Assembly (NCBI RefSeq): GCF_000143415.4
Contig: NW_003314288.1
Coordinates: 1,302,056 to 1,366,055 of the forward strand
Length of the DNA stretch: 64,000 bases
Direction of reading: 5' to 3'
From: Selaginella moellendorffii
Taxonomy: Eukaryota > Plantae > Lycopodiophyta
Part shown: positions 11,530-50,900 of the stretch, piece by piece
Layout of the letters: every line of letters begins with the position of its first letter
How positions within the stretch are numbered: position 1 is the stretch's first letter
Program-made: the position numbers and the translations under genes
The notes under the pieces: generated by a model
Database searches by the model: none
The model's input: the letters and a program-made list of their open reading frames with translations, nothing else
What the model was told of the DNA's origin: nothing

Positions 11530-12410
11530 GTGAAGAAATTTATACCATCTATCATTATGCTTACAGGATTGTTCTTACATGCTTCTAGCATGACAATCCA
11601 AAATGCTCGGCATTTAAGTCGATTCTCCCCGTTAGAAATAAAGAAGATCACTAGTGGGATGTCCTATCTCATCAATTCCCTTAAAAAGCTTTGGTTCCCC
11701 TTAAACCTTATAGCATTAATGAGCCCCGGACACCACAATGATGGTTTTGAAAATCTGTTTCTACTTATATTGCATGACGGTATGTGGAGAGGGCGAGCAT
11801 GATCATCCAAGAACACATTGACAAGTTTTGGATGGCTGGATCGGAGGTGAAGGCTTACCCCCTCGTGAAGAAGGCCTTGTTCTCGCTCGTCTTTAGCTTG
11901 TTCTTGAGTATCTCGGACGAGGAGGAGGAGAGGGAGCTCCTGGCTCCTTTCCAGGATTTCTTGCAAGGGTTGCTTGAGCTGCTGATCGACTTGCCAGGGA
12001 CAATGTTTCGTTGGCATACCAGGCTGTGAAATAAACAGTTATGAATTTAGATGATAAAGCAATAGATTGCTCTTGAGTCACTAAACAAGTGCTAAGTAGC
12101 AATAGTTATGGAACAATGTTAGTAATTTCAAAACTCTTTGGAATTGATTATGTCTCATGGAAAGAAAGGTCACAATGAATTAAATAGTTATATCAAACAT
12201 TGGAATGTTTCAGTTCCCCTTCACGGTCATAATCTCATAATGTATATAGAAGTGTCTTTTTAATCCATGATTGGTATTCAAGCTTAGAAGATTGTTTGCC
12301 TTTTGAGACAAGTGTCATCAGTGGCTTTATCTTGATGAACCATATGTGTTACAATCAAAGAATGGATGTTATCAAGCTATGATTGCAACTTTGTTCTATA
12401 TGACTAAATG
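11530..12410 (+). pseudogene. Pseudogene copy A of the orphan secreted-protein family (paralog of 39951-40910), interrupted by foreign DNA
   Basis: SSMTIQNARHLSRFSPLEIKKITSGMSYLINSLK aligns with SSMTIRYARHPGRFSIPETRKITSAISYVIRSLK. Similarity resumes at ~12100 with YGTMLVISKLFGIDYVSW, HWNVS and IHDWYSSLEDCLPFETSVISGF, with frameshifts. Confidence 0.85.
11778..12012 (+). pseudogene. Isolated internal fragment of a cytochrome P450 (CYP85-clan, CYP716/725-like)
   Basis: GC-richer island translating RYVERASMIIQEHIDKFW...VKAYPLVKKALFSLVFSLFLSI...F..GLLELLIDLPGTMF, typical of the D-F helix region. It has no start, stop or heme motif. Confidence 0.7.
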
Positions 12411-12540
12411 GAAGAAATCTTTATAAATTAAAAATAAAACATTAATCTAAATAAATGACAACCATTAAATGGTAGAATATCCTAGAATATCTAGGTATAT
12501 TCTTTGTATAGGTTTTCTTAAGCAAACCAACAAGATCTTC
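12410..12540. repeat. AT-rich dispersed repeat; inverted copy at ~44690-44830
   Basis: tttataaatt...attaatctaaataaatgacaacc...atggtagaatatcctagaatat matches the reverse complement of 44715-44810. Confidence 0.6.
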
Positions 12541-15185
12541 TTTATTTGTTATGTGGAGAAAGCATGTTTAAACTCATAAAAAGGGGAAATCAGTTAAATA
12601 AGAAGAGAAAGATAAGAGAATTAAAAGAAGAAGAAAGGTCATAAGCACTTAAAGGAGCTAATAATAATGTAAGTTTTCCTATAATCATAAACAATGTGCC
12701 TTTTGGTCTTGGGAGCATCTATGAGTAGAGTTTCACTTCCCTACCTTGAAGTGTTGCATATAAGAGTTGAGTATGGTGGTGTAGGGTCTTGAGTCACAAT
12801 AAATGGTACTCCAATTTTTAATGAAGTGCTTACTAAAGGATTATTTGGTTATCATTTTTTGTATAGAACAGGAGATCCCACTACTTACACTCTGGTTTGG
12901 TCAAATCTTGTTACATTTAATGTATTCTGCATTTCTAAACAAAGTTTGTCATCAGAATAAAAGAGCACATATAGACACATTCTTGATAACTTATAGAGTG
13001 AGTGCACTACTTGCTTATACAACCTAATTGAAATCAAAGTGTCCACACCTCTCATTGTAGCTATTATAGAGCTATATCAACTCTGATTGCAATTTCAAGG
13101 CCGTCCACTTTCCCCAAAGTTTGCCATTTATATTAATACATTGAAGACAATGATTGCATTCAAGGCAGCACTCAATAGCTAGAAAACCAAGAAAGATAAC
13201 CTAATTATGTTTGAATCTCAATAATATGTAAAAAATGAGCAATTGATCTACATAAAAGTACTATTTGGGAAAATCAATTGCATGGAGATCATGGGTTTTT
13301 ATCCAATGAGAGCTTGGAGACAAGTAAAGATCTTCACAAATATGCTTGAAACAGCCAACATATTATCATGTTTGGCCAAGTATATATAAATATCTAGGGT
13401 ATTTCATCCACAAAAATAAATGGCTACAAGTGCATACTTTGCACTTCAATCAACTCTCCATATTATAAAGTTAAATGGCAATTTTTCTTGACAAAAATTC
13501 TATGTAATCAGAAGTTACTGATTCAGGTATGACTAATGCTAAGGAAATAGTAGAGCTACAATACCAATCAATTTTTGCAAACTATAAAATATAAGGTTTT
13601 ATCACCAATTCTATGTATATAACTCCTTTTGCAAGGGTATAACCTTCAAATGCTCTTTTCCAATGAAGCCCTTACTTTTTCTCTACCACTTGAGCCCAAT
13701 CTATTACCAATGAAGTACCTGCCATTCACTTTCCACATGGCATTTGATGGCCATAAGTGGAGTTTCACTAAAATACATACCTAGGGTATAGTGGAGATAT
13801 GGTGTTAGCTATGGTGGATGGAAGTGAAATAATCATGATGATCAGTAGATTTGGGTCTCTTAGGATTTTTCCCCCATCTAACCCTTTATCCAAGCACAAA
13901 AAATGGTAAAACAAGAGTTTTTATTTTTTATTTTTTACCTCAATGAATCTTGACATGTCGAAGGGGCTACAATAAGGTTTTTTCAATATTGTCAACTTTG
14001 TGTAAATTGCATAAGCTCTTCTTCACTTGCTTCTCCCCCACCTCCTAGATGGGTGGCATAAAGGCAACTTTGGATCCTATTGAGTATAAGGATGTATCAT
14101 CGACAAAATTCTCCTTTGGCATTAGCAGATATATATCTCACCTTTGTGATTTGATTTTTTTCTAGTTCCATCCTTGATGCTATAAGAAAAAACAGATAGA
14201 ATCTATGAATAAGTCTAATCATTTTCTCAATTCTTATTCTAATTCTTTGCCTAGAAAGCCTCTATTCTCAATTTTTTTCCTTTAGGATTTAATTAATTTT
14301 TTTCTCCTTCTCTTTTTTCTCAAGACAAAGAAAGTGTCCCTTACTGTACCTAGTGTTTTCAAATTGAGAGCTGTGCCAAGCTGTATCCATCCAACAAAAC
14401 CTAAACCATAAGAGATGTAAATTGACAATGAGTGGGATAATTTGAATTGCTGACAGTCACCATATGGAAGCAAGAAAGTTGAAGTTTTAAGGGTGGGTTA
14501 CTAGCTGCCAAATCTTACCCATATTGTCTGACATTAGTAATGTGGACAAAGTGACAACATAAATCCTACATAAATGCAATGTATGTCCATGCCTAATCAC
14601 TATAGGTCTTAATGGAAATATAAAGATTAGTGATTATATTCCTAGGGCCCCCATATGGCCATCAAGTTCTGCTCCACTATCCTCATATGTTCACAGGTTA
14701 TATTTCACTCTATGGTTATCCTATAGTAAATCACCATAAGGTAAAAGGTAAAAATCACATATGTAAGGTGGGTAAGCCTCACTTCTAGTGGGTGTGGGTT
14801 GGGATATATTTTTGGGATACTTGTAAAAGGCAATATGATTGCATAATAACTATTGGCCTCTTGTAAAAGATGATGGTTAGATTACATAGTTCAATCTTAT
14901 TAATTTCAATTTATTACAGAAAAACTAATTCTTGAAGCTATTGTAACACTTTTATGTACTTTACTTAGAGGGTAAGTTTTTGAATATGTTATTGTCTAAC
15001 TTCAGCAATTTAATATAGATATACTTGCCTCATTCAAAAGAAACATTCCACTATTGTTTTGGCATAAAACAAAATCTATATGGGATCTCAAAGTTAATAG
15101 AAGGCTTGTGATAATAACTCATAAGCTGAGAGTTCACCTATAAATCATAGTGTCATTATATATCCAATTAGGCACTATAGAGAGA

Positions 15186-15519: not shown

Positions 15520-15890
15520 TGCATTTGATATGCTGAAAGATTCTCCCAATTAAAATAAAGAAGATTACTAGTGCTATTTCCTAACTCATTCAATCATTTC
15601 AAAAACACCCTTATTATTCTGTAGGAGTTGTCACAGATAAGTATAGTGCCACTATACACCTTTGGTTTTTCAGCATTGATTACAACTTTAGAGCCAACAC
15701 TTGTTCTATAGCTCCTAACCCCAATAGTATCTTGTCTTCTAATATCATGCAATATGAGTATAAAAATATCTATGAAACTATCATTAGAGTCTCAAGTATT
15801 TAGAACAATGTCAGTTATATCCAAACTTTTGGATATTGATTATATTTCATGGCCTGCCAAGAATGGTCACAATGAATTAAAAGCTAGTGA
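15520..15890 (+). pseudogene. Pseudogene copy B (partial) of the orphan secreted-protein family
   Basis: aagaagattactagtgctatttcct (KKITSAIS), ctttggtttttcagcattg (LWFFSI), CSIAPNP...SNIMQYEY and VISKLLDIDYISWPAKNGHNELKAS are collinear with 40060-40430, with stops and frameshifts. Confidence 0.85.
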
Positions 15891-18418
15891 CAGCAAGAAG
15901 TGTTCATATTCATATTTTGCCTATTCAAGTGCTTGGAAAAAGCTCAAAAGTGTTCCTCATCAAGATCTAGTGCTAGTGTTGGGAGCTTTGCCACATCTAG
16001 TTAGAGCATGAAAGTGAGAGTGGGATATTCCTTGAATATCCCAAGATCCATGTATAAAGCTTACCAAGATTTAGGGCTTTGGAGCTAGCCTTGACAGTGT
16101 GCTTACATTATTGGGTTATCTTGTAGGCAATGACTTTTCCTTGGCCTGAGCTGCCATCTAGTGCCTCTGTGGCAATGAGCTTCTTCCTCTAAGCCCTATC
16201 TAAATCATTGAGATAACTTTCTTCTTGCCAAAACTCAACAAAGATGGTGTTGACTAAAATAGAAAACTTTCGTACTAATTTTGAGAAGTCTGGAGCAAGC
16301 TATTGTCAGCTAGGGGTTGTTCCTAAATGCACTGTGTCCTCAGTGCTCACTGCTCCAGATGCAAAGGATGATGGACTCCACATTTGGAGTGGAAGTTGAA
16401 GTCCACATAAGTTGAAATGCTATCACCCTGGATCAAGATGTCTCAACAAACTCCTAGAGGCACCACTATATTTTTTGTAAAGTTTTGAGTAGTATAGTTA
16501 TGTTCTTTGAAGGAGAAAAGTGCAAAGCCTTCAATAGGTGAGAATAAATCATGTTAGTTGAAGATTCAGTCCTTTGCTAGTATGATCCACTAATCAAAAC
16601 ATTTGCAATAAATGCCTTGGGATCTGGGGATGATTTCAAGTCCATGACTTGGATTGAATGTGGGCCTTTTACAGGAGCCCTTTGCACCAGACTTTTCTTT
16701 GTTCTTATCCTTTAAACTAGAGGATATTTAAGCTAAATACAAATTCATAAAATATGTGTTATGTAACAAATATTTAATCTAAAGCTAATGATATTTTTGA
16801 GAGTTTAAATAAAAGATAATGTATTTTGAGATTAATCTTATAATTATTATTACAATAGTTTGTTAATATAGTCTATTTATGCAAGTGAATGCTTTGTCAC
16901 AGCTCATGAAAATCTTAGAAACATATAGTATTAACACATTTATTTCTTATATGTATATATATTTTAATAGATTCTCATATCAACAATTTTTCTATCACAC
17001 TCAAACACTTTTAAAGACTGATTTCTATCTGATACATCATAGTTGGATTAAGATGATAAATTATACCAATATCCAAATATATATTAAGTATCTTGGTTTA
17101 CTTATTTATTTTAAATATTAATTTCTTTATTTAAAAGATTTGAATTATTATAAATGAATTCTTAACTTGGATATATTTTAAAATTATTATGTTTAATGAG
17201 TGACTTAAATGTTGTGAAAAGTAGTCAAAATATAATATTATATCAAAAGTTGAAGTATCTCTCTTGATCAGGGATTGGCAAGGCATGGGGCAAAGCAACA
17301 ACTTAAAAAATGCCTTTGACACATATGCACATGCTGCTCTTGTTGGAGAAGCATTTTATATTCCTTGAATTTCGCTAATGCTAATTCCATGGCTGAAGTC
17401 ATCTACTCAACTGCTGGTTAGGGTTTGATAATGCAACTAGCAGCCCATAGAGGGCCTTGAACTTAAAAGAAACTCCAGCTCCCAAAATATCTCCATCTCA
17501 AGCTTAGGAGGAGCAATAGCTCAAATTGGTTGAGGAGCTCCAAGACTTGAGACTCCTAGCAAAGACACATCCTCCTCATCGTCCACACTAGTGTGATGAA
17601 TATTGCTTGAACGCTCTTGATACAACATGCTATTGGCATCTCCACTCGGAGCTGTGTCCTCCTCAACAGCAGCTGGTCTAGAGGCAGCTGTTTGCAGATC
17701 ACTCTGCTCTGGCATCATCCTCATCTGGGAGATTCTCCAGCAATGAGCCATCGACGCAACACTATCTATGTCTATCAATCATGAAAAAGCTCCAGCTCAC
17801 ATCAACATGATCAAAACTTATGAGAAAGAGGCACAGAAGCAGCAACTTGCCATGCCCAAAAGTAGAAAGCCATAGCTGCCCAGAAAGGAGATCCAAATCC
17901 CAAGGATTCCTCTCCAACAACACTCACAGCATGCAAGCTACCAGTTCCTTCGGTTTTTCCACTTGATCCCACACAAGAAAATCTTCCAAGACCAGCTACT
18001 TGCACTAAGAGACCCAGTGGAGAACTCCATCCAGCATTTGCTTGACATGCAAGTTTCCCTCTCACTGGGTGATCGTTTGCAAGCAGCTCCAGGAATCGGG
18101 CAGCAATTGAAGGCAATAGCCAGAGCGTCCAATCCAGCTCTTTCTCCCACTCTACCAGCAGACTGTGAGCACAAAGGCATCCTCAGATCCTGGAGTGTAC
18201 ATTATCCCTGCAAAGATGGAGTCCACTGTCAACAAATATCATCTCTCTAGAGCCAGTCTGACCATTTGGGTGACATTCAGAAAATTTAGATTTAAAAGTT
18301 TATATTTGATATTAGAAGGGTGATCTCATAGTAAATTTAAATTTAAAAGTTACATTTGGTATTAAAAAATATTTTATTAGTTGGCTATGGGTGCTTGGAA
18401 TGTGGCATAATGATCCTT

Positions 18419-34799: not shown

Positions 34800-36560
34800 T
34801 GTAAGTGATTAAATTTCCATTTTACTTTAGTCATTTAACCAAGTTTTTAACCCCTTAGAAAAATCTCACTCACAACCTCCATAAGTTTTCATTTGCCATA
34901 AGGTATTTATTATCCTCTAGATATGATTTCCAAATCATACTGACTTTACACATAGTCTAAGTGTTTTACATGTTTGATCCCACTTTAGACACCCAAAAGT
35001 ACCATTAATGCAAAGGTTATATTCATTCTTATCATCTTATTAGTAATCCAAGACTACTTGTACTATGGTCCTATCTTCCCAAAGATTGGGCCATCTGTGG
35101 TCATCCCGTGACCACATTTTAGTATCTTTAAAATGCCCCAAGATATAAGGAACACCATCCTCATAATATCCTTCTTTTAATCCCATAAAGTCCTTATTTA
35201 TTCATGGTAGTGCTTGATGGATTAGATTATATGAACAAACTTGGTGAGCAAAACATTTAACCATTGAGGAGTCTAAAGTTAAAGTGAACATGAATGGACA
35301 AGTGGGATGACTTGGTGAAATATTCAAGAGCTAGCTCTAGTTCCCTTGGGAGATTGAATAGACAATACTCCTAATTCAAATGGGTATAGATAGCACTACT
35401 TACTTAGATACTTTGTATAGCTTATCAAAACTTCATTTTGGCCACATAGCTAGGGTGAAAGGTGGGGGGAGTACTTATAAGACTTGTGTTTAGCTATAGT
35501 GTTTTGAAATGTTTGTTCTAAAATCCCAAACCATGGAAAAAAAATAAGAATGGTTTTCTTACATAGTGACCAAAGGTATATTCATGTGATAAAGAAGTCC
35601 CAAAAGTTAATAGAACTTATTGGTTTGGCCTTTGAGCCCTAACCCAATGGTGGTATTATGTAGCTGAAGAATGCAACCAACTCACTACGTGGTGTAGCCT
35701 TCCTAGGTCACACTAACCTTTCTTGGCTAAATTAATTCCACCAAAGTCTTCCCTCTATTATCCCATAAAAACTTACCAAACCCCCTAGGGCTTGTGAGAA
35801 AATCACTTTGGGCTTTCATCTTTAGACTCAGACTTAGACATAGACTCGGTTTTGGACTTGAACTCGATCTTGGTATTAGACTCAAACTCGGTTTTAGTCT
35901 TAGTCTCAATTTTAGTTTTGGTCTCGGACTTGGACTTGAACTCAAAGTTGTAGCGCACCTTATCTCTCTCCCCTTAAGCCAACTGGAAAAGGGGCAATTG
36001 CTTGATGAGAGAGCCCTTAGTGGCTATTTTATCCCCATTTATCCCCCAAGATTCCAAGGATCCACGGTGACAGTATATCTAAATCTCATCCCATGATCAC
36101 ATGCGCTACAAAAGTCAATCTTGATTTCAGTCTTGGTCTTGGCCTTGGTCTTGGTCTCAGTCTTGGTCTCGATTTTAGTCTTGGTCTCGATTTCAGTCTC
36201 CATTTCATACCTGGTCTCAGACTCCATCTCGGATTCGGCCTCAACCTCCATCTCGTACCTGATTTTAGATTCATTCTCAGACTCAATCTTGGATTCAGTT
36301 TGAGACTTGATCACAACACTTCTATATGTCATGACACTTGCCATGTGTCAGTCCTTTTTATATTCCTTTCTAGAAACTCACTTATCAATTACTTCGTACT
36401 CATTCCTAAAGCATTTCTTTTAGAGTTCCACCCCCATTCTCAACTTTTCAAGTTAGAGCTTTTAATTTAAATATATTACACTTATTGAACTTTTGTTTTA
36501 ACCATTGCTATTTGGCACACTTTTGTCTCCACTTTGGGGCTTAAGGATTTATGTTTTACA
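34800..36560 (-). mobile_element. Old solo LTR of the hexamer-satellite LTR family (homologous to 50213-52051)
   Basis: Termini TGTAA...TTACA. Collinear similarity to 50213-52051, including a decayed GACTCG/GTCTCG array. The flanks TCTAA and CCCAA could be a decayed 5-bp TSD. Confidence 0.8.
35949..36110. mobile_element. 162-bp mini solo-LTR/TRIM-like insertion nested in the satellite
   Basis: 9-bp inverted termini TGTAGCGCA...TGCGCTACA and a perfect 5-bp TSD AAAGT (35944-35948 and 36111-36115). Confidence 0.88.
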
Positions 36561-36599: not shown

Positions 36600-38800
36600 G
36601 GGTCATTTATTTTCCTCAATTGGTAGTATGAGTATCTAGAACTTGTCAAACTTTGAAGATGCACTATTGTAAAATGAAATTTCCTATTTGATGATTAAGC
36701 CTTATAGTTTTATCTGACTATAGGTATCTATACAGAATGCTTTGGCCAATACTACTACTCCATTTAAACATATATACAATCCTATTTCATAGACATAAGT
36801 TCTAAACACTCATAAAAAGAATATAGTAAATTTTAAAGTACGAACCTAACTATTAACTATGCAACCTCCCTTGTAATCTTGAGTGCCCAAATCAATGAAC
36901 GTATATGTACATTACCCCATATCCCATAGGGACTAAAACAACATCAAGAGTGCACTCTCACAATAAGAAATTAGCAAAATTATGAGTACAAACACATAAT
37001 GCTGCTCTTGGGCTATTCATTTCCTAGATGACTCTAATGCAAAATTTAAAGTCACGTATTATGCTTTGTGACACATGAGACTTGCTATAGGGCACTCCAA
37101 CACCAATGTGCTTCCGATGCTAAAATAGTGTTCAATCACGATTGAACTCCAACTCATAACTCCATATGAGGTGTGAATGTCCTCCAACTTAAGGTTGAAG
37201 CATGTTATCTTACTTCCCACATGAAACAAGTGCATTAGCTCATCTTTAAAAAAGTCCTATAGAAACTAGAGAAATACCACAAACCTCCTCAAGAACAAAA
37301 GCTCAAAAGTAAGCACTGGAGAAAAAATGTATGGATCCCCTATACATATAACACTAAATTACCTTTATCCACCACTAGCCCCAATTATGGTAGCAATCCC
37401 TACCACTAAATCCAAAAATCAATCCCTCAAAGTCCCACAAAATCAATCCAAAGCTAATAGCGAGCATAGTTTTCCACAAAACTAAGTGTTGGCATCACTT
37501 GTCCAGAAGCAATAGAATGTGTACCTCCACGAGTCCCTCGAACTCCCCATTAGGGACTTCAACCAAATGGACCCCAACGGACACAGACTTAGAGCTTTAG
37601 TTCGACTTTGGCCCCCCCCGCATTTGCTCTTTTCCAATTTTGAGCATGTCAAAATTGGACTCTATGGTTTTATAGAAACTAAATAAGTAAAACCTGGTTG
37701 ACAAAACTAAGTGTTGAACTCTATTGGGGTTCTGCGACCAAACAATGGAAGAACTAAAATGGGATTTAGCAAAATGGGAATGGAAGGACACATGTAATAG
37801 ATTCTTTTAGTACAAGACCAAACTTGGCTGAAAAGTCATATGCCCACTAGTACAAACCACATTTATCAAAAAAGTGAAAGCACAATAAATCCCATCCCAA
37901 AACCATCTACAATGCGTAAACAAGATTTGGAATGTCAAAACCCAATACTTTATGTGGCTTGCTTAGTAGAAATGCCTCCCCTCACTTGCGATAATACACT
38001 TCCCGAATACAACATGTAGTTTTACATAGCAAAAGAGATATAGCACCATATTCTATGGAAATGCTCAACTACACAAGAAGTTTGGGAGGGCTCAATAACA
38101 ATTCTTAAATGGACCTGTCAAAGTAGTACGGCTGTAACCTATGAATCAGCGCTATGAAGCAGCTTCCTACAAAGGGAAGACCAAACATCTAGATGCCTAG
38201 AAATTGAGACATAACGAGAACCCCTACTTCAATCAACTTAATCGAACATATACACACATTACACATCTTCATTAGGAGCTTTTTGATATCCTCAAGGGAT
38301 GTACTCTTGCAAAGATTTAGAAAGCCTATTCTGTTAGGATGCTTGATAATAAGAATCCCTCAGCTTGGTCGCACTTGATCATCGCATCCTAATTTAACAT
38401 GTTGATGTCTCTTCCTTTCAGTTGCTTACAATCCACCACACTTCTCTGCAAGTTTACACCCTCGTGAATGAAAACTGATACTCTACCCCTTAAGTCGAGC
38501 CCAACTAGTGGTAAACTAGACTTACCAAATGTCAATCTTAACATATGGTGTGATTCCCTTAACCAATCAATAAAATCGGATTTGAGACCTTTCTAATACC
38601 AAATGTAAACTCTTAAATTTAGAATTCTCAAGAAGTCACCTAACCCAATATTATTCAAACCCAAGGATGCTTAATCTCAAGTATCCCAAAATTATTAATC
38701 AATTAGAAAAGAGGGTGCACTTTTATTCATGGGCCCTTTCCCTTATAGATCGTCACTTGAGTCATTCCTTTTGATTGTTTATGTTGAAACCAAACTTTAT
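36600..38800 (-). mobile_element. Highly decayed LTR retrotransposon remnant (possibly copia)
   Basis: Degenerate tRNA-Met PBS on the minus strand (ctttctaatacca at ~38589-38601) next to TG. Faint gag and RNase H-like (HRKHIGV) traces with many stops. Confidence 0.35.
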
Positions 38801-39873
38801 AGTTCTTTAGAGGTTGTTTTTCATATTTATCCTCTAAAAAACTATAAAGTCTAGTTTTGACATATTTAAAACTGGGAAAGAGTATAGAGGGGTGGTGACA
38901 AAGGAGGGATCAATAGAACTAGAGTCCTATTTTATGCAATGGAACTAAAGTTCAGTTCTATGCAACCTAGATCTATGCCATTTACTTCACAAACACATAC
39001 TCTTAATTCTTAGTGGACTTGAATCAATTGTGAAATCAATGGAGGTACAGCACCCTTGCTTAATCTCTATTTATATAGCACCTATAATTTCCTAAAGATA
39101 TAAAAAGCCCCTAAAGATGTACAGTTCTGAATCCCATGGTGTGGTGAACTTAAGAATGTATAACCTCTAGTAATAATGACGTTGTTGCTGCCTGAAAGTC
39201 CTCTCCTTACTGTTGTGCGACCGATCCCCTCCAATTGAGATTGCTATTTTTAGCCTCCCATCAGACTGTGCAAGTTCCAATTGGGATTGTTGTTTCCAAC
39301 CTCCCATCAGGCTATGCAAATGTGGTGCCACTCTGCCAATCCTACAGCCTTATACTAGTATAGCCATACCTTTAGTGCTATCTATATGGAATCATGACCA
39401 AAGGCAAGTTGCTCCTCTTGGATTCAGGTTGAAGTTACATAATCTAACAAATTAGCCTAATGTAGCCTTTAACATGAGTTGTGGCCCTCGAAACATCCTA
39501 TACATGTAAGTGGTATTGCTCCAAGTGCCTTGATCATGATGAATTCATTAGCACTTGGCTTTATCAATTTGGGTTTAATTATTTCCTATTGACAAAACCA
39601 AGTACTAAAGACTTGTTTCCAAGTCCTCTAGCAAGTAGGCAATCCCAAATCATGCTCTACAAACTCCTTATAGCACTATAATGAAACCTTAGCCACCACT
39701 CTTGTCCTTCAAGTGAAATCCCCTCCAAACACTTGTTTTACCTCAATAAAATATTAGTTACTACTAGATAACTATTGTTTGAGCATGCAAGGATTTTGGC
39801 ATAAAGAAAATCATATTATTTTAAACTTAAATTATTTCCCTACATGAATGAGTACAAAAACATTATATATCTA

Positions 39874-39914
39874 CCACGTGGAAGGTCATAATAAGAACTA
39901 TGGCTGTATATAAA
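39874..39914 (+). promoter_or_regulatory. G-box/ABRE (CCACGTGG) and TATA box (TATATAAA) of the orphan gene
   Basis: CCACGTGG at 39874-39881, TATATAAA at 39907-39914, ATG at 39951. The same ACCACGTGGAAG precedes pseudogene copy A (11444-11455). Confidence 0.65.
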
Positions 39915-39950
39915 GAGAGTGCTAGAAGTAAATTTTATTTAATCTTGATT

Positions 39951-40910
39951 ATGAAGAGTTTAGTATATGTCCTAACTATTACTATATTCATAGGAATGTT
40001 CATATATGTTTCTAGCATGACAATAAGGTATGCTAGACATCCAGGGCGATTCTCCATACCAGAAACAAGAAAGATTACAAGTGCTATTTCCTATGTCATC
40101 AGGTCCCTTAAAAGGAATTCATTCTATTCTACAGGGCGTAGCTTTACATACAATCCTACAGTTTCTAATAAGTATAAAGTTTCTATAAGGCTTTGGTTCT
40201 TTAGTATTGCTCCCTCAATGATCTCTGTCACTTGTTCAGTATCTCCAGACCCATCTATGGCCTTGCCTTCCAATTTCATGAAAGATGAGTATATGAAAAT
40301 CTTCAAAACTATATTTTTGGAGTCTCGAGTGAATGGCTATGGAACATTGTTAGTTATTTCAAAACTTTTGGGAATTGATTATATTTCATGGCCTATCAAG
40401 AAAGATCATGATGAATTGAATGCTAATAGTAACCACTGGAATGTTTCAGCAGCCCTTCCTCTTTATACTTTTTCAATTCAACCTCGAAGTCTTAACAGGA
40501 GCACTTTTATAATTCATGATTGGTATTCACAGTTAGAAGACTGCTGGCCTTTTGAGATGAGTATGATTAGTGGCTTTGAATCTTTGGGTTCCTTTGTTCT
40601 CGAACCATATACCTTTCAATCTAAGAGCCGACGTTATAAAGCTCATTTACAAGTCAATTGCAAATTTATTCTGAATGACTTAGATACGAAAGAAATGCTC
40701 TATGTAAGTCCCATTGATACAGATCCTCCATGCCCGTTGACTATAAATCCTCATGCAGCCATAAAGATTGGTGACTTAATTTTAATCGATATAGGAAAGC
40801 GCCTTTGCAAAGATCAATCTGATTGCATAATAACAACCGGATTATCTGTAGAAGAAGGTTATATTGGACTATGGGACACAGACGATGTGTGGGGCGGTCC
40901 TTTCAACTAA
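39951..40910 (+). CDS. Uncharacterised intronless secreted protein, 319 aa (orphan family, intact member)
   Basis: Uninterrupted ORF in AT-rich DNA. N-terminal MKSLVYVLTITIFIGMFIYVSS looks like a signal peptide. Six Cys, a TATA box just upstream, and two decayed paralogs in the window. No domain recognised. Confidence 0.8.
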   Translation: MKSLVYVLTITIFIGMFIYVSSMTIRYARHPGRFSIPETRKITSAISYVIRSLKRNSFYSTGRSFTYNPTVSNKYKVSIRLWFFSIAPSMISVTCSVSPDPSMALPSNFMKDEYMKIFKTIFLESRVNGYGTLLVISKLLGIDYISWPIKKDHDELNANSNHWNVSAALPLYTFSIQPRSLNRSTFIIHDWYSQLEDCWPFEMSMISGFESLGSFVLEPYTFQSKSRRYKAHLQVNCKFILNDLDTKEMLYVSPIDTDPPCPLTINPHAAIKIGDLILIDIGKRLCKDQSDCIITTGLSVEEGYIGLWDTDDVWGGPFN

Positions 40911-41189
40911 GTTAAGTCCCATGTGCAAGTGGACCGTCTTATTCATTCCACGCTCTTGAGCACCTCATAAGCGAAAGTTTTTCGTTCTCCAAATGAAGCA
41001 CCTGCACCACCAGCACATAGAAACTTATGTAACCGTGAGATCTGCCTAAAATTCAGAAGAAAACGGAGAAACGTTACTTGCTTACACTGTTAGTGAGTAA
41101 ATATCTCAGATCATGTTGATCCAGAGTAGCGACACTGCTATGAAAAAACTTTTGCAAACCGATTGTGAGCTGAAATAAGGGGGCTCGAC

Positions 41190-41424
41190 AAGAGCGCACT
41201 CGATCTGTCCAACTAGAAGAAATCCGTGCAAGCAGCTCATGGAGGCAAATTCGGCAGTGGCCAGCGCCAGTCCTGGATAAGTCCGTCAGCCCCACGCTTC
41301 TCGTACGATTGTGATCTGCAAGCAAACAGAAACGTAACTTCAAGCACTCTGGGTAGTTCGTCATAGCGAAAGATCATGATGTCCTGGCGTATGGGGCCAG
41401 GACCAGCGACAGCCACGCCATGTC
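41190..41424 (+). pseudogene. RRA pseudogene, 5' part (deleted copy of ~31850-32250)
   Basis: aagagcgcactcgatctgtccaac, gcagctcatgg, aggcaaattcggca, ggataagtccgtca, gatcatgatgtcctggcgta and ccacgccat all match the RRA gene in order. Confidence 0.8.
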
Positions 41425-41603
41425 ACCAATGTTCAAAGTTAAGGGTTGGAAGACAGTCCAGTTTTAAATAGGAGTTTTTAAATTTCTTACGGATGCTAGT
41501 TTTTCATCTTGCTCTCAGACGTGGATATTGACTCCCTCCAGATTGCCCTTACCACCGTCTGGTCAATCTCCAATTTAGATCCATGGTGGATCATGCCATA
41601 ATA

Positions 41604-43880
41604 TCAAACTGGGACTGAAAAAGCATTGGCCGTGAGAATGTATGCCATGTTGACCTTTGGGTCCAGCTCTGTGACATGCTTAGCAGCAAAGGCTCCCAAC
41701 TCAAGGTTGCCGTAGATTTTACACCCATTAAGCAAACAACACCACTCCAAAACTTCTGGAACAAATGGCATGCATGATGTCAACTCGCCAGCCTCACGCA
41801 AATGCCCTGCACGGCTCAAGAGATCAATCATGCAACTGTAGTGCTGTTTCAATGCTTGCAGCCCATAGTCAACGCTCATAGACACAAACAAGCATCTACC
41901 AACATAAACCTTGCCTACTTGGCTGCATGCCGCAAGGGCAGACATGAAGCAAATCTCATCCGGAAGAAAGCAATCGTCTCTCAAATTGTAAAATGCATCC
42001 AATGCTTCACTAAAGTTACCACTACAAACACAGCTGGCTAGCAACGAGCTCCAAGCGACCAAGCACCTCTCGGGCATCTCAAGCAAGAGCTTTCTACAAT
42101 GCAAGAGGTGGCCGGTTTGAGCATAGAGAGACAACATTGCAGTCCAGGAGGCTGTGTCCTTCCGTGGCATGTCGTTGAACACTTCCCTCGCTTCCAGTAG
42201 ATATCCATTTTGGGCATAAGTTGCAAACATCACATTCCAGCACACAACATCTCTGTCTTTCGGAGAGATTCTTTCAAACAAGCCCTTAGCATCTTCCACT
42301 TGTCCATGTTGGCCAAAGTTGAGAACCATGACTGTTGAAGAGACTGAATCTTGAAATGGCATTGTGTCGAAAAGCTGCTTAGCCTCTTCAAACTTGCCGC
42401 TTTTGGAGAAACTCGAGATCATTATAGTGCTAGACACAACATCCCACTCTGGCATTTCGTACTGGAAGATTTCCTTGGCTCTACTTATCATCCCTTTCTG
42501 GGCCTCTATTGAGAGTAATGTATTCCAGGAAATCCGATCCTTTTCAGGCATCATGTCGAAAACCCTTTTTGTTTCCTCCAAGTGCCCGTTTAGTGCATTT
42601 GCTGACAAAAGAGCATTCCACGACATTGTACTATGCTGTGGCATTTTTACAAACAGTTCTCTAAATTCCGACAGGTACTTATTTTGTGAAAGAGCTGACA
42701 GCATTGCATTTGCCGCCTCTATTGTCTTTTGTGGCATCATTTCAAAGATATTCTTTGCTTCATCCAGATGCCCGTTTTGGGCATAAGCACACAGTATAAT
42801 TGTCCATGAAACCAGATCGTGTTTTGGCTCGCTATCAAAAATCACTCTTGCTTCTTCGAACTTCTCGTCATGCACATACGCTGAAAGCATTGCATTCCAA
42901 GAAACCATTGTTCGTTCGGGCATAGCTTCAAAGATGATCACCGCGTTTTGCAGATCTCCGAGATGGGCACATGCAGAGAGCATTGCATTCCAAGCTACAA
43001 GATCGTGCTCCGGCATTGCTCTGAACGTTTCTTTAACAGCTTGTAACTCTTTGACCTGTAAAAATGCGTCCAGCAAGCACGTCCATGACACCAAGTTTCT
43101 AAACGGCATCTGATCAAAAGTTTGCTTGGCTAAGGAAAAGTTTCCTCTCTTCACATACGCAGTGAGCACTGCTGTCCACGATACGAGATCCCATTCCGGC
43201 ATGAGATCAACAAAACTTCTCGCAATTTCAACAGTTCCGTTCTGCACATACGCGTTGAACATAGCCGTCCAAGAGATTAAATCTCGTAGTGGCATCGTGT
43301 GAAACATTCTCTTAGCAAGAACAAGGTGCCCTGTTTGGGCATATGCAACAAGCATAGTGTTCCAAGCAACTAATGTTTGCCTTGGCATTCCATCGAACAA
43401 AATTTTAGCCTTTTCAAGAAATCCATGATGAACGTACGCGTCAATCATGCAGTTGCAAGCCACCGTATTTGCATCTGGCATCCTTGCAAAGGTATTTTCG
43501 GCTTCCTCTAGATGCCCAGCACGGGCATATGAGCTTAACATTGCAACCCAAGAAACAGTAGTTCTCTGAGGCATCGAATCAAAAAATCCCTTTGCATTCT
43601 CAAGGCTGCCATACTTTGAGTAAGCATTCATCATGAAATCCCAAGAGTAGACATCCCTGGAAACCATGCTATCAAAAACTCGTTTGGCGTGCAATGAGCT
43701 TCCACACCTCGTGTACATTGCGATGAGCTTGTTGCACAGGAAAACATCATCAGTTTTGGCACTGTTACTGGCATGCAGATCCTCAGCCAAAGCCAAGCTC
43801 TTGCAAGATTGAATGAGTTCTAGGCACTGGACTCTGTCCATAGTCTTCCAAGGATTTTCATGGATGGTAATTCCTTGCAT
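41604..43880 (-). CDS. PLS-class PPR protein with short E extension, no DYW (PPR3), 758 aa, intronless
   Basis: MYTRCGS, a long array of ~31-aa repeats, PDEICFMSALAACSQVG, HYSCMIDLLSRAG and PEVLEWCCLLNGC. It is clearly AT-richer than PPR1/2. Confidence 0.9.
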   Translation of the reverse strand: MQGITIHENPWKTMDRVQCLELIQSCKSLALAEDLHASNSAKTDDVFLCNKLIAMYTRCGSSLHAKRVFDSMVSRDVYSWDFMMNAYSKYGSLENAKGFFDSMPQRTTVSWVAMLSSYARAGHLEEAENTFARMPDANTVACNCMIDAYVHHGFLEKAKILFDGMPRQTLVAWNTMLVAYAQTGHLVLAKRMFHTMPLRDLISWTAMFNAYVQNGTVEIARSFVDLMPEWDLVSWTAVLTAYVKRGNFSLAKQTFDQMPFRNLVSWTCLLDAFLQVKELQAVKETFRAMPEHDLVAWNAMLSACAHLGDLQNAVIIFEAMPERTMVSWNAMLSAYVHDEKFEEARVIFDSEPKHDLVSWTIILCAYAQNGHLDEAKNIFEMMPQKTIEAANAMLSALSQNKYLSEFRELFVKMPQHSTMSWNALLSANALNGHLEETKRVFDMMPEKDRISWNTLLSIEAQKGMISRAKEIFQYEMPEWDVVSSTIMISSFSKSGKFEEAKQLFDTMPFQDSVSSTVMVLNFGQHGQVEDAKGLFERISPKDRDVVCWNVMFATYAQNGYLLEAREVFNDMPRKDTASWTAMLSLYAQTGHLLHCRKLLLEMPERCLVAWSSLLASCVCSGNFSEALDAFYNLRDDCFLPDEICFMSALAACSQVGKVYVGRCLFVSMSVDYGLQALKQHYSCMIDLLSRAGHLREAGELTSCMPFVPEVLEWCCLLNGCKIYGNLELGAFAAKHVTELDPKVNMAYILTANAFSVPV

Positions 43881-43903: not shown

Positions 43904-44167
43904 TCATTTTAACGATGCTGTGATGTTTACAAGTGCCTTTACAAGCTCATCTGGAGTGGAAAAGAAGGGGCTGTGATCAGATGCAAGCTCTAGAACACCG
44001 TTGGGGGGATTGTTTTCCAAGAGATAATCTTGCATTGCCACGGGTAGCATCCCTTTGATGTAATAACGAGGAACACTTCCATACTTCTCTTGGGTGTACT
44101 CCACCCCGATTTCAGAGGGTGGCAACAAAGGATTTGGTTTGAGAAGAAGATTTCCTAGCTCCACATC
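43904..44167 (-). pseudogene. Orphan last exon of a methylesterase (MES/SABP2 alpha/beta-hydrolase)
   Basis: Acceptor ...aaacAG|GAT; [13 protein letters not shown]...[10 protein letters not shown]...NNPP..V.EL.SDHSPFFSTPDELV. The segment that normally holds the catalytic Asp after YIK appears deleted, and no upstream exons are present. Confidence 0.8.
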
Positions 44168-44225
44168 CTGTTTGAAGTTCAGTTTTAGTAGCGGGTCTAA
44201 AAGTTTTGCAGGATTTCACCTCGGA

Positions 44226-45437
44226 GGAACAAAGTTTCACATCCTGCGAGAGTTCCTCGTGCTGGGCTTGCCCTACCTCCACAACCCGTTCAAGTTCTTG
44301 CAGCGCGACTGCGACATGGAGGCCATGACCGACGGCCACACCAACGCCAACGCCTATGGATACAACGACGTGTTCGACGATCCAAAGATGGGCTGATCGC
44401 GGTACGCGCACACAATGAGGATCTGGGTGTTTAACTCGGGGCTGTTCTACTTGCGGCCCACGGTGCCTTCGATCGAGCTCCTGGACCGGGTGGCGACGAG
44501 GCTGGCGAGAGAAGGCGTGGGATCAGGCCGTGATCAATGAGGAGCTCTTCTTCCCGACTGATCTTGTGATTGATAGATACTTTTTTTTTTCAAACTATAA
44601 AATGAAGACACGTTCATTGGTACAGATCATGGCAAGAACATCATCAAACATACATCAGCAAGAAAATGGGAGGACAAGACCAATTTATTTGCTTTATCTT
44701 TTAGATTTTTTGTTTATCTAGAATATACTTAAATATTTTAGGATATTTTACCATCTAAGGTTATCATTTATTTAAATTAATCCTATATTTATAATTTATA
44801 AAGTTTCTTAAACACTTTCTAGTATATTCTAGTTTATTCTACCATCTAATAGTTGATATTCAATATGATAAATCTTGTGTTTATAAATTATAAACATGAT
44901 CAATTCAATTGATCAATAGGAATAATACTACTATTAAGCAAACTAAGCAATTGATCAATAGGAATAATATTACTATTAAGCAAACCAAACATTACTAGAT
45001 GCAAGGCATAACAAATTATTGAAACTATTATTGTAGAATCCTATATTAATTGAGATTAACACATATTATTTGAATCTTGGTTCATATTTTGATGAGTCAT
45101 ATGTCTTTAAATCAAAGACTATCAAGACAATATAATGATTGTGGCTTTTGCTTTATTGAAGAATGCTAATTTTGCTAACTATAGTTCTCAATTATGAAAG
45201 CTTGTGGTGTCTAGTGTGCTCTTGGTCACATACAACCCATTAACTATAGGTAAACATAAATATTATTAATTATATGTTTTTGGCATACATGCTATAAGGG
45301 ACTTGATTGCATAATAAGAGTTAAGACTCTTAGTGAAAGTTTTACATTTGAGTTATGGAATACATAAACTTAAATATTCTCACATCAAAGTTTTGGTTTA
45401 AGGGTTATGAGCTCTTTAGGAAACCATGCACCACTTT
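44226..45437 (+). pseudogene. RRA pseudogene, 3' part, plus duplicated downstream flank (copy of ~32254-33379)
   Basis: Near-identical [14 protein letters not shown]...DDPKMG with TGG->TGA at 44394-44396, a frameshift and internal deletions. The 3' flank stays similar up to catgcaccactt. Confidence 0.92.
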
Positions 45438-45439
45438 TT

Positions 45440-47900
45440 CATTTGGCTCCTAGCTTCGATGTTGAAGTTAGTATTTGCATCTAGCAATCATTAGTGATGA
45501 TTGACTATCATCTGGGATAATTGATTATCCTTGTCAAAGGTTTTGCTTGATTATTGTTGATTTAGATTGATTTGCTATTCTTCAGGATGGTGGATTCCTT
45601 CTTAGACGATGATTTTGCATCTCTTTATTGATGGGATAATTGACGATCTTTCATGATAGTTGGTTGTTCTCTTTGATGGCTTTTGGCTTTTTGCAATACC
45701 ACATGTTCTTTGTGGTTTGTTCTGGATTGGTCTTTTGGGTTTGAGACGTCAGTAGGATGTTGCTGACACTTGCTTAGGCAACTTGAGTTCCTTGGTATTG
45801 TTGGCTGGGATCTATTCAGATTGGCTTTTGTGATAGTTGGCAGGCATGAGTGTTTGTTGGTCTTACCACATTCATTCTCTTCTATTGATTGTTGCTCGAG
45901 TTAGTTTTGATAGATTTGGATGTTATTTCCTTTGGGTGATACATTCGCGAGCATTGTGCTTGTTAGTCAATGATACTTTGTGTTCTTTGAGTTCTCTCTA
46001 GTAAGTTGTTGGGTTACTGTCTACTATCTTCGGTAGTTAAGTTTCATCATTGAGTTTCCTTGATAATATACTAGCTATTGAATTTTGTTGGATGGTCATT
46101 CCTATGTTTGCCAAATTATGATGATCTTGGTGGTTCCTATCTACAATACTACTGGTTTATTGGATGATAACTTGCTTAGAATACTTTTGTATTTATAATC
46201 ACTAGTAATTAAGCTTCTCAGATATTATTGTCTCTGACTTTGATATTGTCCATTTATGAGTTTGGGCCAGTATAGGCAGACTGGCTTCGGCACTTCGTGC
46301 GTATGGTGAAATCTCTAGTCATGGGGTAGCTACTGTCAACTGGTCACATAACCCGCCTCTTTGTTGATGTTCCTTATTCCGTTAAAAAGGTGTGACCGTG
46401 TAAACAACTCTAACTGCCTGTTTACAGTAGTCTATCTAAACCTTACCGACGGGTTTGGTTTTTTTGCTTAGGAGGGTTGGGGCCTCTGGCTTCTTGCTCT
46501 ATGTTCCTGCAGGCAGGGGCATATCACACTTTTGTAAGCTGGGTGATTCCCAGAGTAGCAAGGGTGGCTAACTATGTTGGTCATTTCCTTGTCGGCGACG
46601 GCCGGAAGGTGTCTGAGCTGGTAGCGCATCCGCGTTAGACAAAGAGGTTGCCTCCTAACTCATTTAAGTTGGTGCATTTCTCACATAGTGTGAGTACCGT
46701 GAACTTTTTCTGGAGTTGTTTCCTTGGCGGTATTTTAGACTCGAGTGTGCATCGACGAGGACGTCGATTTTCCCAAGGGGGGGAGAGTGTCGCGAATGTG
46801 ACTTCGGGTATCGAAAGTTACCTATCGGCTAGTCCTTATGGACACTCTTACCTTACTGCCGCGATGGCAGGAGGTCGGTATTGCTGGTTTCCTTTATTAG
46901 CCCCTCTTGTCCAAGTGTTAGCTTACTGGGCTTAGCATCTGTACTTAGCCAGATGAACATAAGGTAGGAACTCCTATGTGTTTCTAGCTGAGCATTCTCG
47001 GCCTGGCTCTTAGTTCTCTTTTGCTCTGTCTTGCACTGGCTTGGCAAGAACTCTCGCGTATTGAGATTAGTCCCTCAATATCGCTGGATGATAGCTTACC
47101 GTGTTTGCCAAACACCCTCGCTATCATGCCCTTTGTGTTAGTCTCATTTCGGTCCCAAATGCTATTTATGGAAAGTGTCCAGATTTGCTCATTTGGCATA
47201 TCTACGGAATGTAGAGATCGACCTGAACACAATGGTGTTCGTCCCGTGTCCAAATTCGCAATCTAAAGACATTCCATATTTAGTAAGTTTCGAGTTTGTC
47301 CCTGAGACTAACTCCTGATACTAAGGGAGGCTTGGGGTGAAAGCCCAAAGCGTGTGTTTCTCAAGGGGGGCGGGGGGGGGGGGGGGGGGGCTATGGGGGG
47401 TTCCAAATGTATAGTAGGGATAGTGGGTAGGTCGGGCATGGCTGACCAACTTGAAGTATAGTCTAGCTCCCGCTTGCGTGCCTGTCCTTGTTCTGCGTCC
47501 AGCTTGGGTCTAAGCCCAAGTTCCATTCCATGCTAGCTGGTGGAGTACCCATGTCCTCGCGTTAGGCCACCGGTATGCCGAAATAGCGTCAGACTCCGTT
47601 TGGCTTTGTTTTGCGTGCTGGTCCTAGCATTGGGATGCTGGTTCCTCTAGGACTGTTCCAAGTCGCTCCGGGCCCCTGTCCCTTCGCTCCTTGGGCTGTA
47701 TGCTCGGGAGTTGCTCCGTGGTTCGGTTCCATCACTCCTTGGCTCCATACTTGGGAGTTTGGCACCGTTGGGATGCTTGGCGTGACTCCCCATGCCGGTG
47801 CACCAACTTATACTTAAAGCGTGCTATAGATCACAGCTTAGGAACCTAGTTCCTCCGAACTGCCAAGTCCTCTCATTTTATAAGTTTGTGATCATGCATG
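45440..47900 (-). mobile_element. Decayed retroelement-like sequence
   Basis: Strong T/G strand bias mirroring the A/C-rich element at 52-57 kb, a Pro-rich/gag-like stretch and a G-run at 47364-47400. No intact domain. Confidence 0.35.
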
Positions 47901-50900
47901 GACTCCTCCATGCTCGGCCCCATGGGCCACCCCTTTTGAAGATAGCACCTTCAATTAGGTGATTTGTTCCCCTGACTTGCCAATCTCACTTAGCAAGTCA
48001 TCTAGCCACTGTAATATGGTTCATGCATAAGCATGAAAGTCTTTAACCATCGACTTTCGTTCAAAGCCCTCTCTTTGAACACTTGGGAAATAATTCCCCA
48101 ACCTTGATAGCCTTGTCTCATAGCCAACTTCAAGACCACGCTTCTACTACACCACTCTGATTTCGCGTGCTCTAGGAACCATTTACACTTAGCTTTCTAG
48201 GTACTTATCTACCTAGAATTGTCTTTGGGAACCTTCAAGGAACTTTGTTCCTTAACTTGCTAAAGCTTCTCCTTTGCAAGCTCCCTACTTACCATATGGT
48301 CTAACATGGATAATTCCACATTTTAGACTTTTCATGGCATCACAATTGCTAGTAACAACATCCTCGAGCGCTCACTTGATTCTCCACTCCCAACTTGTAT
48401 AACCACCATTAGTTATGCCCTTCGATTTCTATGGTTTAGTTCCATCTCAATACTACTTGCATTTTGGCCTCATATGTTTCCTTTGGTTATTCTCCTCCAA
48501 ACCAGGAGGATACCTTTGCATATTCTACCATGCCTTGGCTCACCTTATAATCCCACACACCGGGATTACCGTTGCTACTTATGGGCCTCGATATACCCAT
48601 CACTAGCCTTGCCAAAATCCCATTTTTGGCTTTGTCCAAATTGGGTAGACAAATTTTTCCCATTTCCACAACCTTGGACGTTTGGATGGCATCTCCTATC
48701 CATCATTCGCTAGGGATTTAGTCCCTTGGGCCTTATCTATTGCCCTTACAACACTAAACACCACCTCCTGGTGTTCTAGAGTGTTTAGGTGTCCCAATGA
48801 TGGTCTCCTTGACAATGAGTATTTCCTTTTTCGACATTGACTTCCTATATCACAGCATAAGCAATTTATCCCCCGTAAGGGTATATCTAACTTCCTTATG
48901 CCATTAAGAAGTCTTGGGTAGTTACCTTCTACCCGTTTAACCAATTATCTTGCACCTTTTGCTTAATTGCCCTATAGTTGTCAAGTTCTACAACTCATTG
49001 CTTGGTGCTTCCATACTTCCATCATTATCTGGGTCACTACACTCCAACCACATGCCTTCCAGCTTAGGCTATGCGATTCCCTTGGCAAGGGGTTCCCATA
49101 AACCTATCAACATAACCTCAAGGTATCTCACTTTAGCACATTTGGTGTCTCCCCACCAACGGTTCCACAAGCTTACCTTTATGACACTTCTTATTTGTGT
49201 CTAGGTCTTTGCCAAGACCAAAGTAGTCGTTTTTCATGCTAACTATCAGTTAGCATTACACCATAGTGTTCACACACAACTCTATGCAAAAGTTGCTAAT
49301 TTTTTTTTTTTTTTTTTTGGGAACACCTTTCCCATAACTTTAGCATGGCACATTCTGCTATCAATGAGATACCCACTATTCTCATACTTGGATCTTAAGA
49401 TCCTCCCCATCCTTTGTGGAGTACAACACACTTCAGTCCAAATGCTTCCATCAATCCCTTAGGATTAATCCTTGACTCTACTTGAGTCATCTAGCTTTTT
49501 GGACTTTGCTAATCAAACAACCATGACGTCCTACTTTTGAGGTGCCAGCTAACAAGAATACAAGTTCATGTATTCATGTCTTACTCATAAGGACCATCTT
49601 TGCAAGTGTTACTCTAACACTTGATTTTGTTCTCTAGGACCAACTTTTGCCCCTTATGACTACTTGTCCATGTGATGAGAATACCAACTCCCCATCTAAG
49701 TACACCCCTAACTCCTTGGGTTGTTCTAACATTTATTAGAGGTAGCCCCGGTTACCATTTCAAGGACTTGTGTCCTCTCTTGTATTTGACCTCCCATGGT
49801 CATCAATTCCGGTCTCAAAGTTATAAGCACTAGCTTCAATTATATAAGGGTAATCTTGTGACTCCTTTATTATTTTGGAGTCTGCATCATTCCCGTGATC
49901 CCAACTATAGTTGTTTGCCACAACTACATTAGCCCGTTTGCTGCGTCAAACGTTCATTTGGATCACATCCTTAGCTCTCTGAGGAAACCCTTATACTGTT
50001 CCCAAGATCCCAAAGTCATTCCCTTACTGGCTCTTTTCCATCCACCACATCATACACAAGTTCACACATGAACTTGAGTGGAGAGCCATGTCCTCTCGAC
50101 ATGCTACTCCTTGAGGATAGGTCCATATCTAGGACCTTCCAATTCCAATACAAGTGGTGATATACTTGGCCACCAATAAGAGTCGGACTAAGGAACAGCT
50201 CTGATACCAAGTTGTAAGTGACTAAATTTTTCCATTCTACTTTAGTCACTTAATCACACCTCCAATCACTTGGAGGAGTCTCATTCACAACCTCCATAAG
50301 TCCTATTCCAGACTTGGGCATGCTAGCTCTGAGAATGGCATCCCCGCCACTCAACCTTTGCACTTGGCCCAAGTGCTCCACGTGTCCAATCCCATAACTG
50401 ACACCCAAAGGTACCACTGACATATCAACCTGTTACACTAAGGCCATGCCCATTCACCTTTGCCACACTGGTGGTCCAATACCACTTGCATCACAATCCC
50501 GTCTCTCCAAGACTGGGCCATTCATCCACGAATGGTCATCCCAAATCCACTCTTTAGCATCCTTAAGATGCCCACAGACATGGGGAATAACCTTCCCCAA
50601 TATCCCTTTGTCAGTTCCTATCAAGTCCCTTTTCTGTCTATGGCCATGCTCACCAACACTGCCACTAGATCAAGGCCCATAGGCCCAACCACTAAGTCCC
50701 ATTGTCCTTTGGGACTTCTTCACCATGTGACCGTATCCTTGGTCACTACATTGGAGGACTGCTCCTCCTCCTTTCCCCAATTTGGGACTTCGAGACAACA
50801 TTTCGAAACACCGTGGCCCTACGCGAGCCCCGTGGGTACTCTCCCCACCTTCTGCCTTTAGGTGCTCTAGCCAAGGGCTTAGAGTGAGGTTCCATTGAGC

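Follow-up and report, generated by a model that had tools for sequence, protein, structure and literature searches.

A 64,000-nucleotide stretch of the genome of the lycophyte Selaginella moellendorffii (assembly GCF_000143415.4, contig NW_003314288.1, positions 1,302,056 to 1,366,055 of the forward strand; hereafter the window) carries, in AT-rich DNA, an open reading frame (ORF) of 319 codons which raises the question of whether it is a living gene and, if so, what kind of protein it specifies. A first-pass annotation, made from the sequence alone, had seen in it the one intact gene of an unrecognised family of intronless secreted proteins, accompanied by two dead paralogs. The analysis presented here leads us to regard the ORF, with a probability of roughly 0.6, as a live gene of a lectin-fusion family that is either silent or conditionally expressed. 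It would belong, as a member that lacks introns and has escaped annotation, to a family of two-domain secreted proteins restricted to Selaginella. In these a predicted signal peptide precedes, in order, an alpha+beta N-terminal domain of ~130 amino acids (aa; the N-domain), a linker in which an N-glycosylation sequon is conserved and, at the C-terminus, a lectin domain of the GNA/bulb type.

Reading frame and relatives

A stop-free frame of 336 aa spans 39900..40910 of the forward strand of the window, and its second Met, at 39951, opens a 319-aa form at the point where the full-length relatives begin. Because this start coincides with that of all full-length relatives, 39951..40910 (+; 319 codons and a stop) is likely the true extent of the gene, and 39900..39950 (+) is an optional in-frame extension of 17 codons from an upstream ATG, as read directly from the sequence and the ORF listing. 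A hidden Markov model (HMM) of the family scores 454 bits on the window across 39951-40907. The coding frame contains no stop over the length of the ORF, while the five alternative frames there have 17-37, and the longest run without a stop in the AT-rich flanks is 149 codons. Inspection by eye of the 90 nucleotides 5′ of the likely start codon revealed, on the forward strand, a single perfect G-box, CCACGTGG, at 39874-39881 and two stretches resembling a TATA box, at 39863-39871 and at 39907-39915. The intact 319-aa ORF reported by the first-pass annotation was thus upheld, with its stop-free frame and a second-Met start shared with relatives, whereas the statement that its intronless state distinguishes it from its neighbours was not, as the adjacent pentatricopeptide repeat (PPR) genes are also single ORFs and the lack of introns therefore does not set the ORF apart. 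The ORF has no self match in a protein collection of 5.8 billion clusters, and it is therefore not an annotated gene.

A word-indexed search of that collection returned a single relative, SELMODRAFT_402485 (41% identity, 87% coverage, E 2.6e-55), and an exhaustive phmmer search of 1.84 billion representatives returned four clusters of true relatives, each of them from S. moellendorffii; a fifth phmmer cluster, P0003, was rejected as a low-complexity artefact. Look-up of the clusters yielded eight relatives, all from S. moellendorffii, encoded at four loci on two haplotypes (as placed in assembly GCA_000143415.2) and named 'hypothetical protein' in GenBank and 'Bulb-type lectin domain-containing protein' in UniProt. 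Each of the four loci occurs on scaffolds of both haplotypes, and its neighbours are conserved: the first two form a tandem pair adjoining citrate synthase and P450 genes, another adjoins TYW2 and TrkH genes, and another adjoins cyclin genes and has truncated or fused gene models with N-domain remnants in other frames. SELMODRAFT_420673 (194 aa; L003 10175-10899) and SELMODRAFT_421973 (458 aa; L004 10385-11073) represent one locus on the two haplotypes, and they look like a frameshifted or mis-modelled full-length member because remnants of the N-domain are found upstream of them in different frames.

The closest comparison is offered by SELMODRAFT_402485, 402484, 408385 and 408386, which at 330-333 aa were counted as being of the same length as the ORF protein and which share with it the order of signal peptide, N-domain, linker and lectin domain, the six-Cys pattern and the intronless state, at 41-43% identity overall and 54% in the N-domain. 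They differ from the ORF in being annotated, in forming a tandem pair at a gene-rich syntenic locus, in their GC content at third codon positions (GC3; 0.74 versus 0.31) and in retaining a partial sugar site II (Q-D-N-V), the ORF being without any sugar site. Membership of the ORF in this Selaginella family of N-domain and bulb-lectin proteins is supported by full-length homology, domain order, Cys pattern and signal peptide. The proposal of a secreted-type, lineage-restricted family is in agreement with the finding that all relatives among the 1.84 billion representatives come from S. moellendorffii, and a full-length family profile gave no match outside the family in the word-indexed search; the copy number and taxonomic range so obtained are those of protein databases, which depend on annotation. 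A literature search on the relatives' locus tags found no paper. Both the gene family and its lectin domain already figure in databases, uncharacterised, and the ORF is a new, unannotated member.

Domain layout of the predicted protein

The predicted protein begins with a signal-peptide-like segment (aa 1-21; 39951..40013, +), the call being based on hydrophobicity and conservation: its hydrophobic core has a Kyte-Doolittle value of 2.64 over 12 aa, small residues (V-S-S) sit between this core and the first conserved block, which is the conserved mature N-terminus, and the layout is the same in the relatives P0001 and P0004. The signal-peptide-like N-terminus and six Cys noted in the first pass are both present, together with two N-x-S/T sequons, and the start, Cys pattern and sequon are common to the relatives, from which it may be expected that the protein enters the secretory pathway and is glycosylated and disulfide-bonded. 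The family-specific N-domain (aa 22-148; 40014..40394, +) has one conserved Cys and a predicted helix-strand-strand-helix-strand order. It is followed by a variable linker (aa 149-192; 40395..40526, +), where the sequon N-x-S (HWNVS) occupies the site of LWNES in P0001, and by a C-terminal region (aa 193-319; 40527..40907, +) that carries a CWPF motif and, by the family profile, a degenerate GNA/bulb-type lectin domain. Identity to P0001 amounts to 54% in the N-domain, 33% in the linker and 40% in the lectin part.

A profile of an eight-sequence family alignment, the ORF included, matched 35 solved GNA-type (bulb-type, beta-prism II) lectins, with all matches confined to profile positions ~211-324 and E values of 1e-14 to 1e-7; they include scafet lectin (1dlp; 1e-14), gastrodianin (7e-13), neoculin (1e-10), the garlic and snowdrop agglutinins (~1e-8; snowdrop 5e-8) and pyocin L1. 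All family members share C237 and C261 (319-aa numbering), which correspond in the alignments to the Cys pair of gastrodianin and scafet lectin, the canonical lectin disulfide pair (one Cys in motif I, one before motif II) being kept in the ORF, and alignments to the solved lectins also place sub-domain motifs I and II. On the strength of this homology the C-terminal third of the family is assigned as a GNA/bulb-type lectin domain. The earlier view that the protein contains no recognisable domain is thereby superseded, the relatives already carrying the lectin label in UniProt; a confident match to a characterised family was obtained for one of the two domains, the lectin domain, and not for the N-domain. 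Pfam gave nothing at curated level for the ORF, its separate domains or the relatives, the only relative with a match to B_lectin (PF01453) being P0002, weakly and below the cut-off (E 0.0066). An AlphaFold2 model of the ORF protein built from eight sequences had a predicted local distance difference test score (pLDDT) of 39; its C-terminal part is all-beta, at a pLDDT of only 50-70, and Foldseek with this low-confidence model gave neoculin at a template modelling score (TM) of 0.51 and gastrodianin at TM 0.56, both at E > 0.1 and not significant.

None of the three QxDxNxVxY mannose-binding motifs is intact in the ORF. At site I only the Q is kept (LQVNCKFILN, versus MQRDCNFVLY in P0002), and sites II and III are lost. 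Among the relatives P0002 has an intact site I (Q-D-N-V-Y) and a near-intact site II, the P0001 group has an impaired site I and Q-D-N-V at site II, and P0004 has lost both; site III is degenerate in every family member, the ORF included. Canonical mannose binding by the ORF protein is therefore not expected, judging from these residues. The family resembles the monocot GNA-related lectins (snowdrop agglutinin, gastrodianin, scafet lectin) in its profile match of ~100 residues, its Cys pair and its sub-domain motif spacing. Those lectins, however, are made up of lectin domains, singly or in tandem, in which between one and three QxDxNxVxY sites are intact, whereas the ORF has one degenerate domain, below the Pfam threshold, behind an unrelated domain of ~130 aa. 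A parallel is offered by neoculin/curculin, GNA-fold proteins that no longer bind mannose, in which the canonical sugar sites have likewise degenerated although the fold persists in a different use; neoculin is also the best weak fold echo of the ORF model, but it is a heterodimer of two lectin-only chains with a known taste-modifying activity and lacks an N-terminal partner domain.

The N-domain proved harder to place. The four N-domains matched no Pfam family even at E 10, PF01657, KP4 and ribosome-inactivating protein (RIP) families included, and a profile of the domain matched no sequence in the PDB and, in the word-indexed search (candidates of 0.55-1.75x query length), no protein at E <= 0.1. 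An AlphaFold2 model of the N-domain from 13 rows, being all available family pieces, reached a pLDDT of 53.5 and a predicted TM of 0.52. The best E value of this model was 0.5 in a Foldseek search of the PDB, its best Z was 4.8 in a VIA-align comparison with 48,161 representatives, against a stated tool noise of 7-8, and its TM was at most 0.42 in an Atlas shape search; Atlas feature searches gave no usable lead. From the two weak models (pLDDT 39 and 53.5) we claim neither a known nor a new fold for the N-domain.

These results bear on a specific version of the live-gene reading, namely that the family comprises AB-type toxin-like defence proteins, in which a killer-toxin-like or antifungal N-domain (of the ginkbilobin-2/DUF26/KP4 type or RIP-like) would be delivered by the lectin. 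The secreted two-domain layout with a C-terminal lectin fits such a protein, small alpha+beta sandwiches could accommodate the predicted helix-strand-strand-helix-strand order, and a Gnk2/PF01657 cluster is found among the structural neighbours of the Atlas's own P0001 model at TM 0.43. That model is, however, poor (pLDDT 0.44) and unrelated families outscore the Gnk2 cluster (0.52-0.55), while neither Gnk2 nor KP4 was among the matches listed by Foldseek, VIA-align and Atlas for the N-domain model. The DUF26 hallmark C-x8-C-x2-C is absent, as the N-domain has a single Cys, and a RIP A chain was found neither by Pfam nor among the PDB sequence matches. As the supposed targeting lectin is in addition without an intact sugar site in the ORF copy, we consider the toxin-like version unlikely.

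AT drift, dead copies and maintenance of the open frame

The ORF is AT-rich, as first described, with a GC content of 0.356, a GC3 of 0.315 and an observed/expected ratio of CpG (CpG o/e) of 0.44, compared to a GC3 of 0.74 and 0.66 for the relatives' genes and 0.70-0.79 for the other genes of the window; the ORF flanks and the region of the dead copies have a GC content of 0.33-0.37 and a CpG o/e of 0.08-0.24. At 48 four-fold sites where the amino acid and the two leading bases of the codon are common to the ORF and P0001, 30 changes run from GC to AT (20 transitions and 10 transversions) and a single one from AT to GC. As the relatives are GC-rich and this bias is 30:1, the AT-richness of the ORF is a derived drift toward the composition of its flanks and not a foreign trait, which is consistent with deamination of methylated cytosine, with GC-biased conversion having been lost in a region rich in repeats, or with both as the cause. 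If the gene had been horizontally acquired, its odd composition would reflect a foreign donor, and in GC content it does lie far beneath the genes that are typical of its neighbourhood. All relatives are, however, from Selaginella, with no bacterial, fungal or viral match at E <= 1e-3 in the 1.84 billion representatives, and they have the same architecture, are GC-rich like native genes and lie at syntenic loci on two haplotypes; the composition of the ORF has moved to the flank value (GC 0.36 versus 0.37) by the biased substitution described. Since the relatives are all native and GC-rich, horizontal transfer is without support, and we consider it almost certainly not the origin of the gene.

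The drift is not confined to the ORF. An intact PPR gene of 758 aa that adjoins it (41604-43880, -) is intermediate in composition, with a GC3 of 0.48 and a CpG o/e of 0.59, compared to 0.70-0.75 and about 1.05-1.10 for the other PPR genes of the window, which suggests that a regional AT drift also affects this neighbour.

Simulations were used to gauge what such drift does to an unconstrained frame. When the relatives' coding sequences were brought to the GC3 of the ORF by the fewest GC-to-AT changes that suffice, a mean of 11-19 stops and a minimum of 2 arose, with an open frame left in 0 of 5000 runs each, and a fuller decay model introduced about 22 stops. As neutral decay left no frame open, selection kept the frame of the ORF open during most of the AT drift. 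Deep-conserved positions were defined as those of the mature protein at which the two most divergent GC-rich clades agree. Of 63 such positions the ORF has retained 42: in the N-domain 21 out of 23, and across linker and lectin domain 21 out of 40.

The window also contains two members of the family that, from their homology and lesions, are dead, in agreement with the first-pass annotation, both being on the same strand as the ORF and carrying stops and frame changes. The first, psiA (11551..12423, +; translated and family HMM matches), has three in-frame stops and a frame change and survives in three pieces in differing frames, at 11551-11688 (family HMM 9-54), 12098-12328 (HMM 126-207, with the three stops) and 12340-12423. 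The second, psiB (15552..15912, +; family HMM), lacks the lectin part and has one stop and a frameshift between pieces at 15552-15797 (HMM 37-125, with the stop) and 15778-15912 (HMM 120-166, in the other frame). A possible stray C-terminal remnant at 14822..14860 (+) is identical to the C-x5-C segment of the ORF at 10 of 13 aa, a weak match (E 0.44). Both dead copies have 72-74% DNA identity to the ORF, within the coding sequence only, and over the columns that they cover they keep 25 of 44 conserved positions as compared to 33 of 44 in the ORF. It had been stated that they retain four motifs of the intact protein; GIDY[IV]SW and IHDWYS.LEDC.PFE are indeed found, and the other two are not, the C-terminal parts being gone save for the weak 13-aa piece. 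The birth-and-death turnover read from these copies is also evident beside P0004 and P0009, where both haplotypes have, 1.3-2.4 kb downstream, inverted and fragmentary lectin-domain pieces whose identity to P0004 reaches 92%, with a more diverged piece 6 kb upstream of P0004 in L002 (fragments at L002 3689-3991 (-), L002 12283-12659 and L006 12338-13374). As family debris also occurs near these members, such turnover is a property of the family.

The scattering of family fragments near other members, together with the repeat-rich and AT-rich surroundings, might also point to an ORF that is carried, or was captured, by a transposon, and decayed retroelements had been proposed on either side of it. 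These were not confirmed: ten of the longer stop-free stretches in the AT-rich zones (71-149 aa) gave no match to Pfam, no transposase, reverse transcriptase or integrase domain occurs in them or in the ORF, and no pair of long terminal repeats or terminal inverted repeats was found flanking the ORF. There is no flank homology between the ORF and the other copies, the likeness in DNA ending at the coding sequence, and on either haplotype the relatives are embedded among ordinary genes at syntenic loci that are stable. We therefore judge a transposon-borne origin very improbable.

Expression was assessed from three stranded RNA-seq runs of one study, about 12% of each run being read, and no reads were found at 38400-41157. 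The same runs gave 1-5x coverage of the adjoining PPR gene, by reads that are 95-99% alike and of which some possibly derive from paralogs, and 5-10x at 44.1-44.3 kb. At this latter locus (44047-44300) the reads occur on both strands and there is no long ORF; many of them run into unlike sequence at 44169, 44226 and 44266, which look like exon boundaries of an expressed gene. A run of unknown library type, X1, contained an exact 200-nucleotide contig at 40600-40799, which was not counted as expression. The gene would thus be silent or only conditionally expressed.

Several of these observations weigh against a live gene of the lectin-fusion family. The absence of RNA from the three runs, the absence of the ORF from the genome's gene annotation, the loss of all three sugar motifs, the change of 21 of the 63 deep-conserved positions, and the location in AT-rich, CpG-depleted DNA near two dead copies would all fit a gene on its way out, that is, a silenced relic which functioned through most of the AT drift, is now unexpressed and has not yet acquired a stop, a pseudogene in waiting. 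In addition, the ORF alone matches neither PF01453 nor any PDB sequence, so that the lectin assignment of this copy goes via its relatives, on whose homology its identity as a lectin rests; the weak models of the N-domain leave the proposed role one by analogy only; and close GC-rich relatives have a dN/dS of 0.47-0.75, albeit from few substitutions, so that the family is fast-evolving or weakly constrained. For the ORF itself dN/dS against the relatives was not computable, synonymous sites being saturated. Against a relic stand the 319 codons at 36% GC without stop or frameshift, although decay free of constraint would have introduced 2 stops or more, and typically 11-19, the almost full retention of the N-domain and the better conservation of the ORF relative to the dead copies. 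Furthermore, the adjoining PPR gene has undergone the same compositional drift, is intact and has reads over it, and AT drift alone therefore does not mean death. A relic is accordingly possible but, in our estimate, not probable, and the live, silent or conditional gene is preferred.

The neighbouring genes are PPR genes, a glycosyltransferase gene and an FBPase fragment. Between the ORF and the PPR gene, 41190-41242 and 41507-41542 are 84-86% identical to parts of the glycosyltransferase gene at 31660-32856 and are probably a small dead fragment of it. A degenerate repeat with an 18-nucleotide period and at least nine copies occupies 35800-36500 and on either strand generates overlapping open frames of 100-149 codons that are spurious, and 46000-56000 has a strong strand asymmetry, with an AT skew from -0.23 (46-48 kb) to +0.27 (54-56 kb) and a GC skew down to -0.28.

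Proposed role and significance

If the ORF is a live member of the lectin-fusion family, the ancestral lectin domain may have bound mannose-type glycans and thereby brought the N-domain to glycan-bearing surfaces. In the ORF copy the lectin module could act only as a scaffold or as a binder of something else, as in neoculin, and the N-domain would be the part that is still selected. By analogy, our best guess is that the family acts in extracellular recognition or defence. A bolder extension would have the N-domain as a truly new fold with an effector-type activity, and the family as a lycophyte-specific, fast-turnover secreted arsenal in repeat-rich, CpG-depleted compartments, kept open by selection despite strong AT drift; this we regard as a long shot, and if true the arsenal would parallel, in a plant, the AT isochores rich in effectors that are found in some fungi.

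In most of the plant architectures described for chimeric lectins the lectin domain is N-terminal. Combinations of GNA domains with S-locus/PAN/kinase receptors, a glycoside hydrolase or peptidase M11 are reported in a survey of plant lectin architectures that covered S. moellendorffii (PMC6362431), and like the ORF these join a GNA domain to an unrelated domain in a protein of the secretory pathway. The combination of the N-domain with a GNA domain is not among the architectures described in the passages of that paper available to us (PMC6362431), and unlike the partners in the known chimeras the partner domain of the ORF matches no Pfam family. Its architecture is nevertheless a variant within the known class of chimeric GNA lectins, and the ORF is not a foreign or unprecedented element.

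The locus is a clean natural example of a gene whose synonymous GC content has moved from about 70% to about 31% with the frame kept open, and as such it bears on the interplay of regional mutation bias versus selection and on annotation pipelines, which miss AT-shifted Selaginella genes of this kind. Plant chimeric lectins couple a glycan-binding module with a second activity, and a lycophyte-only partner domain without detectable relatives would add a new module to the chimeric-lectin repertoire.

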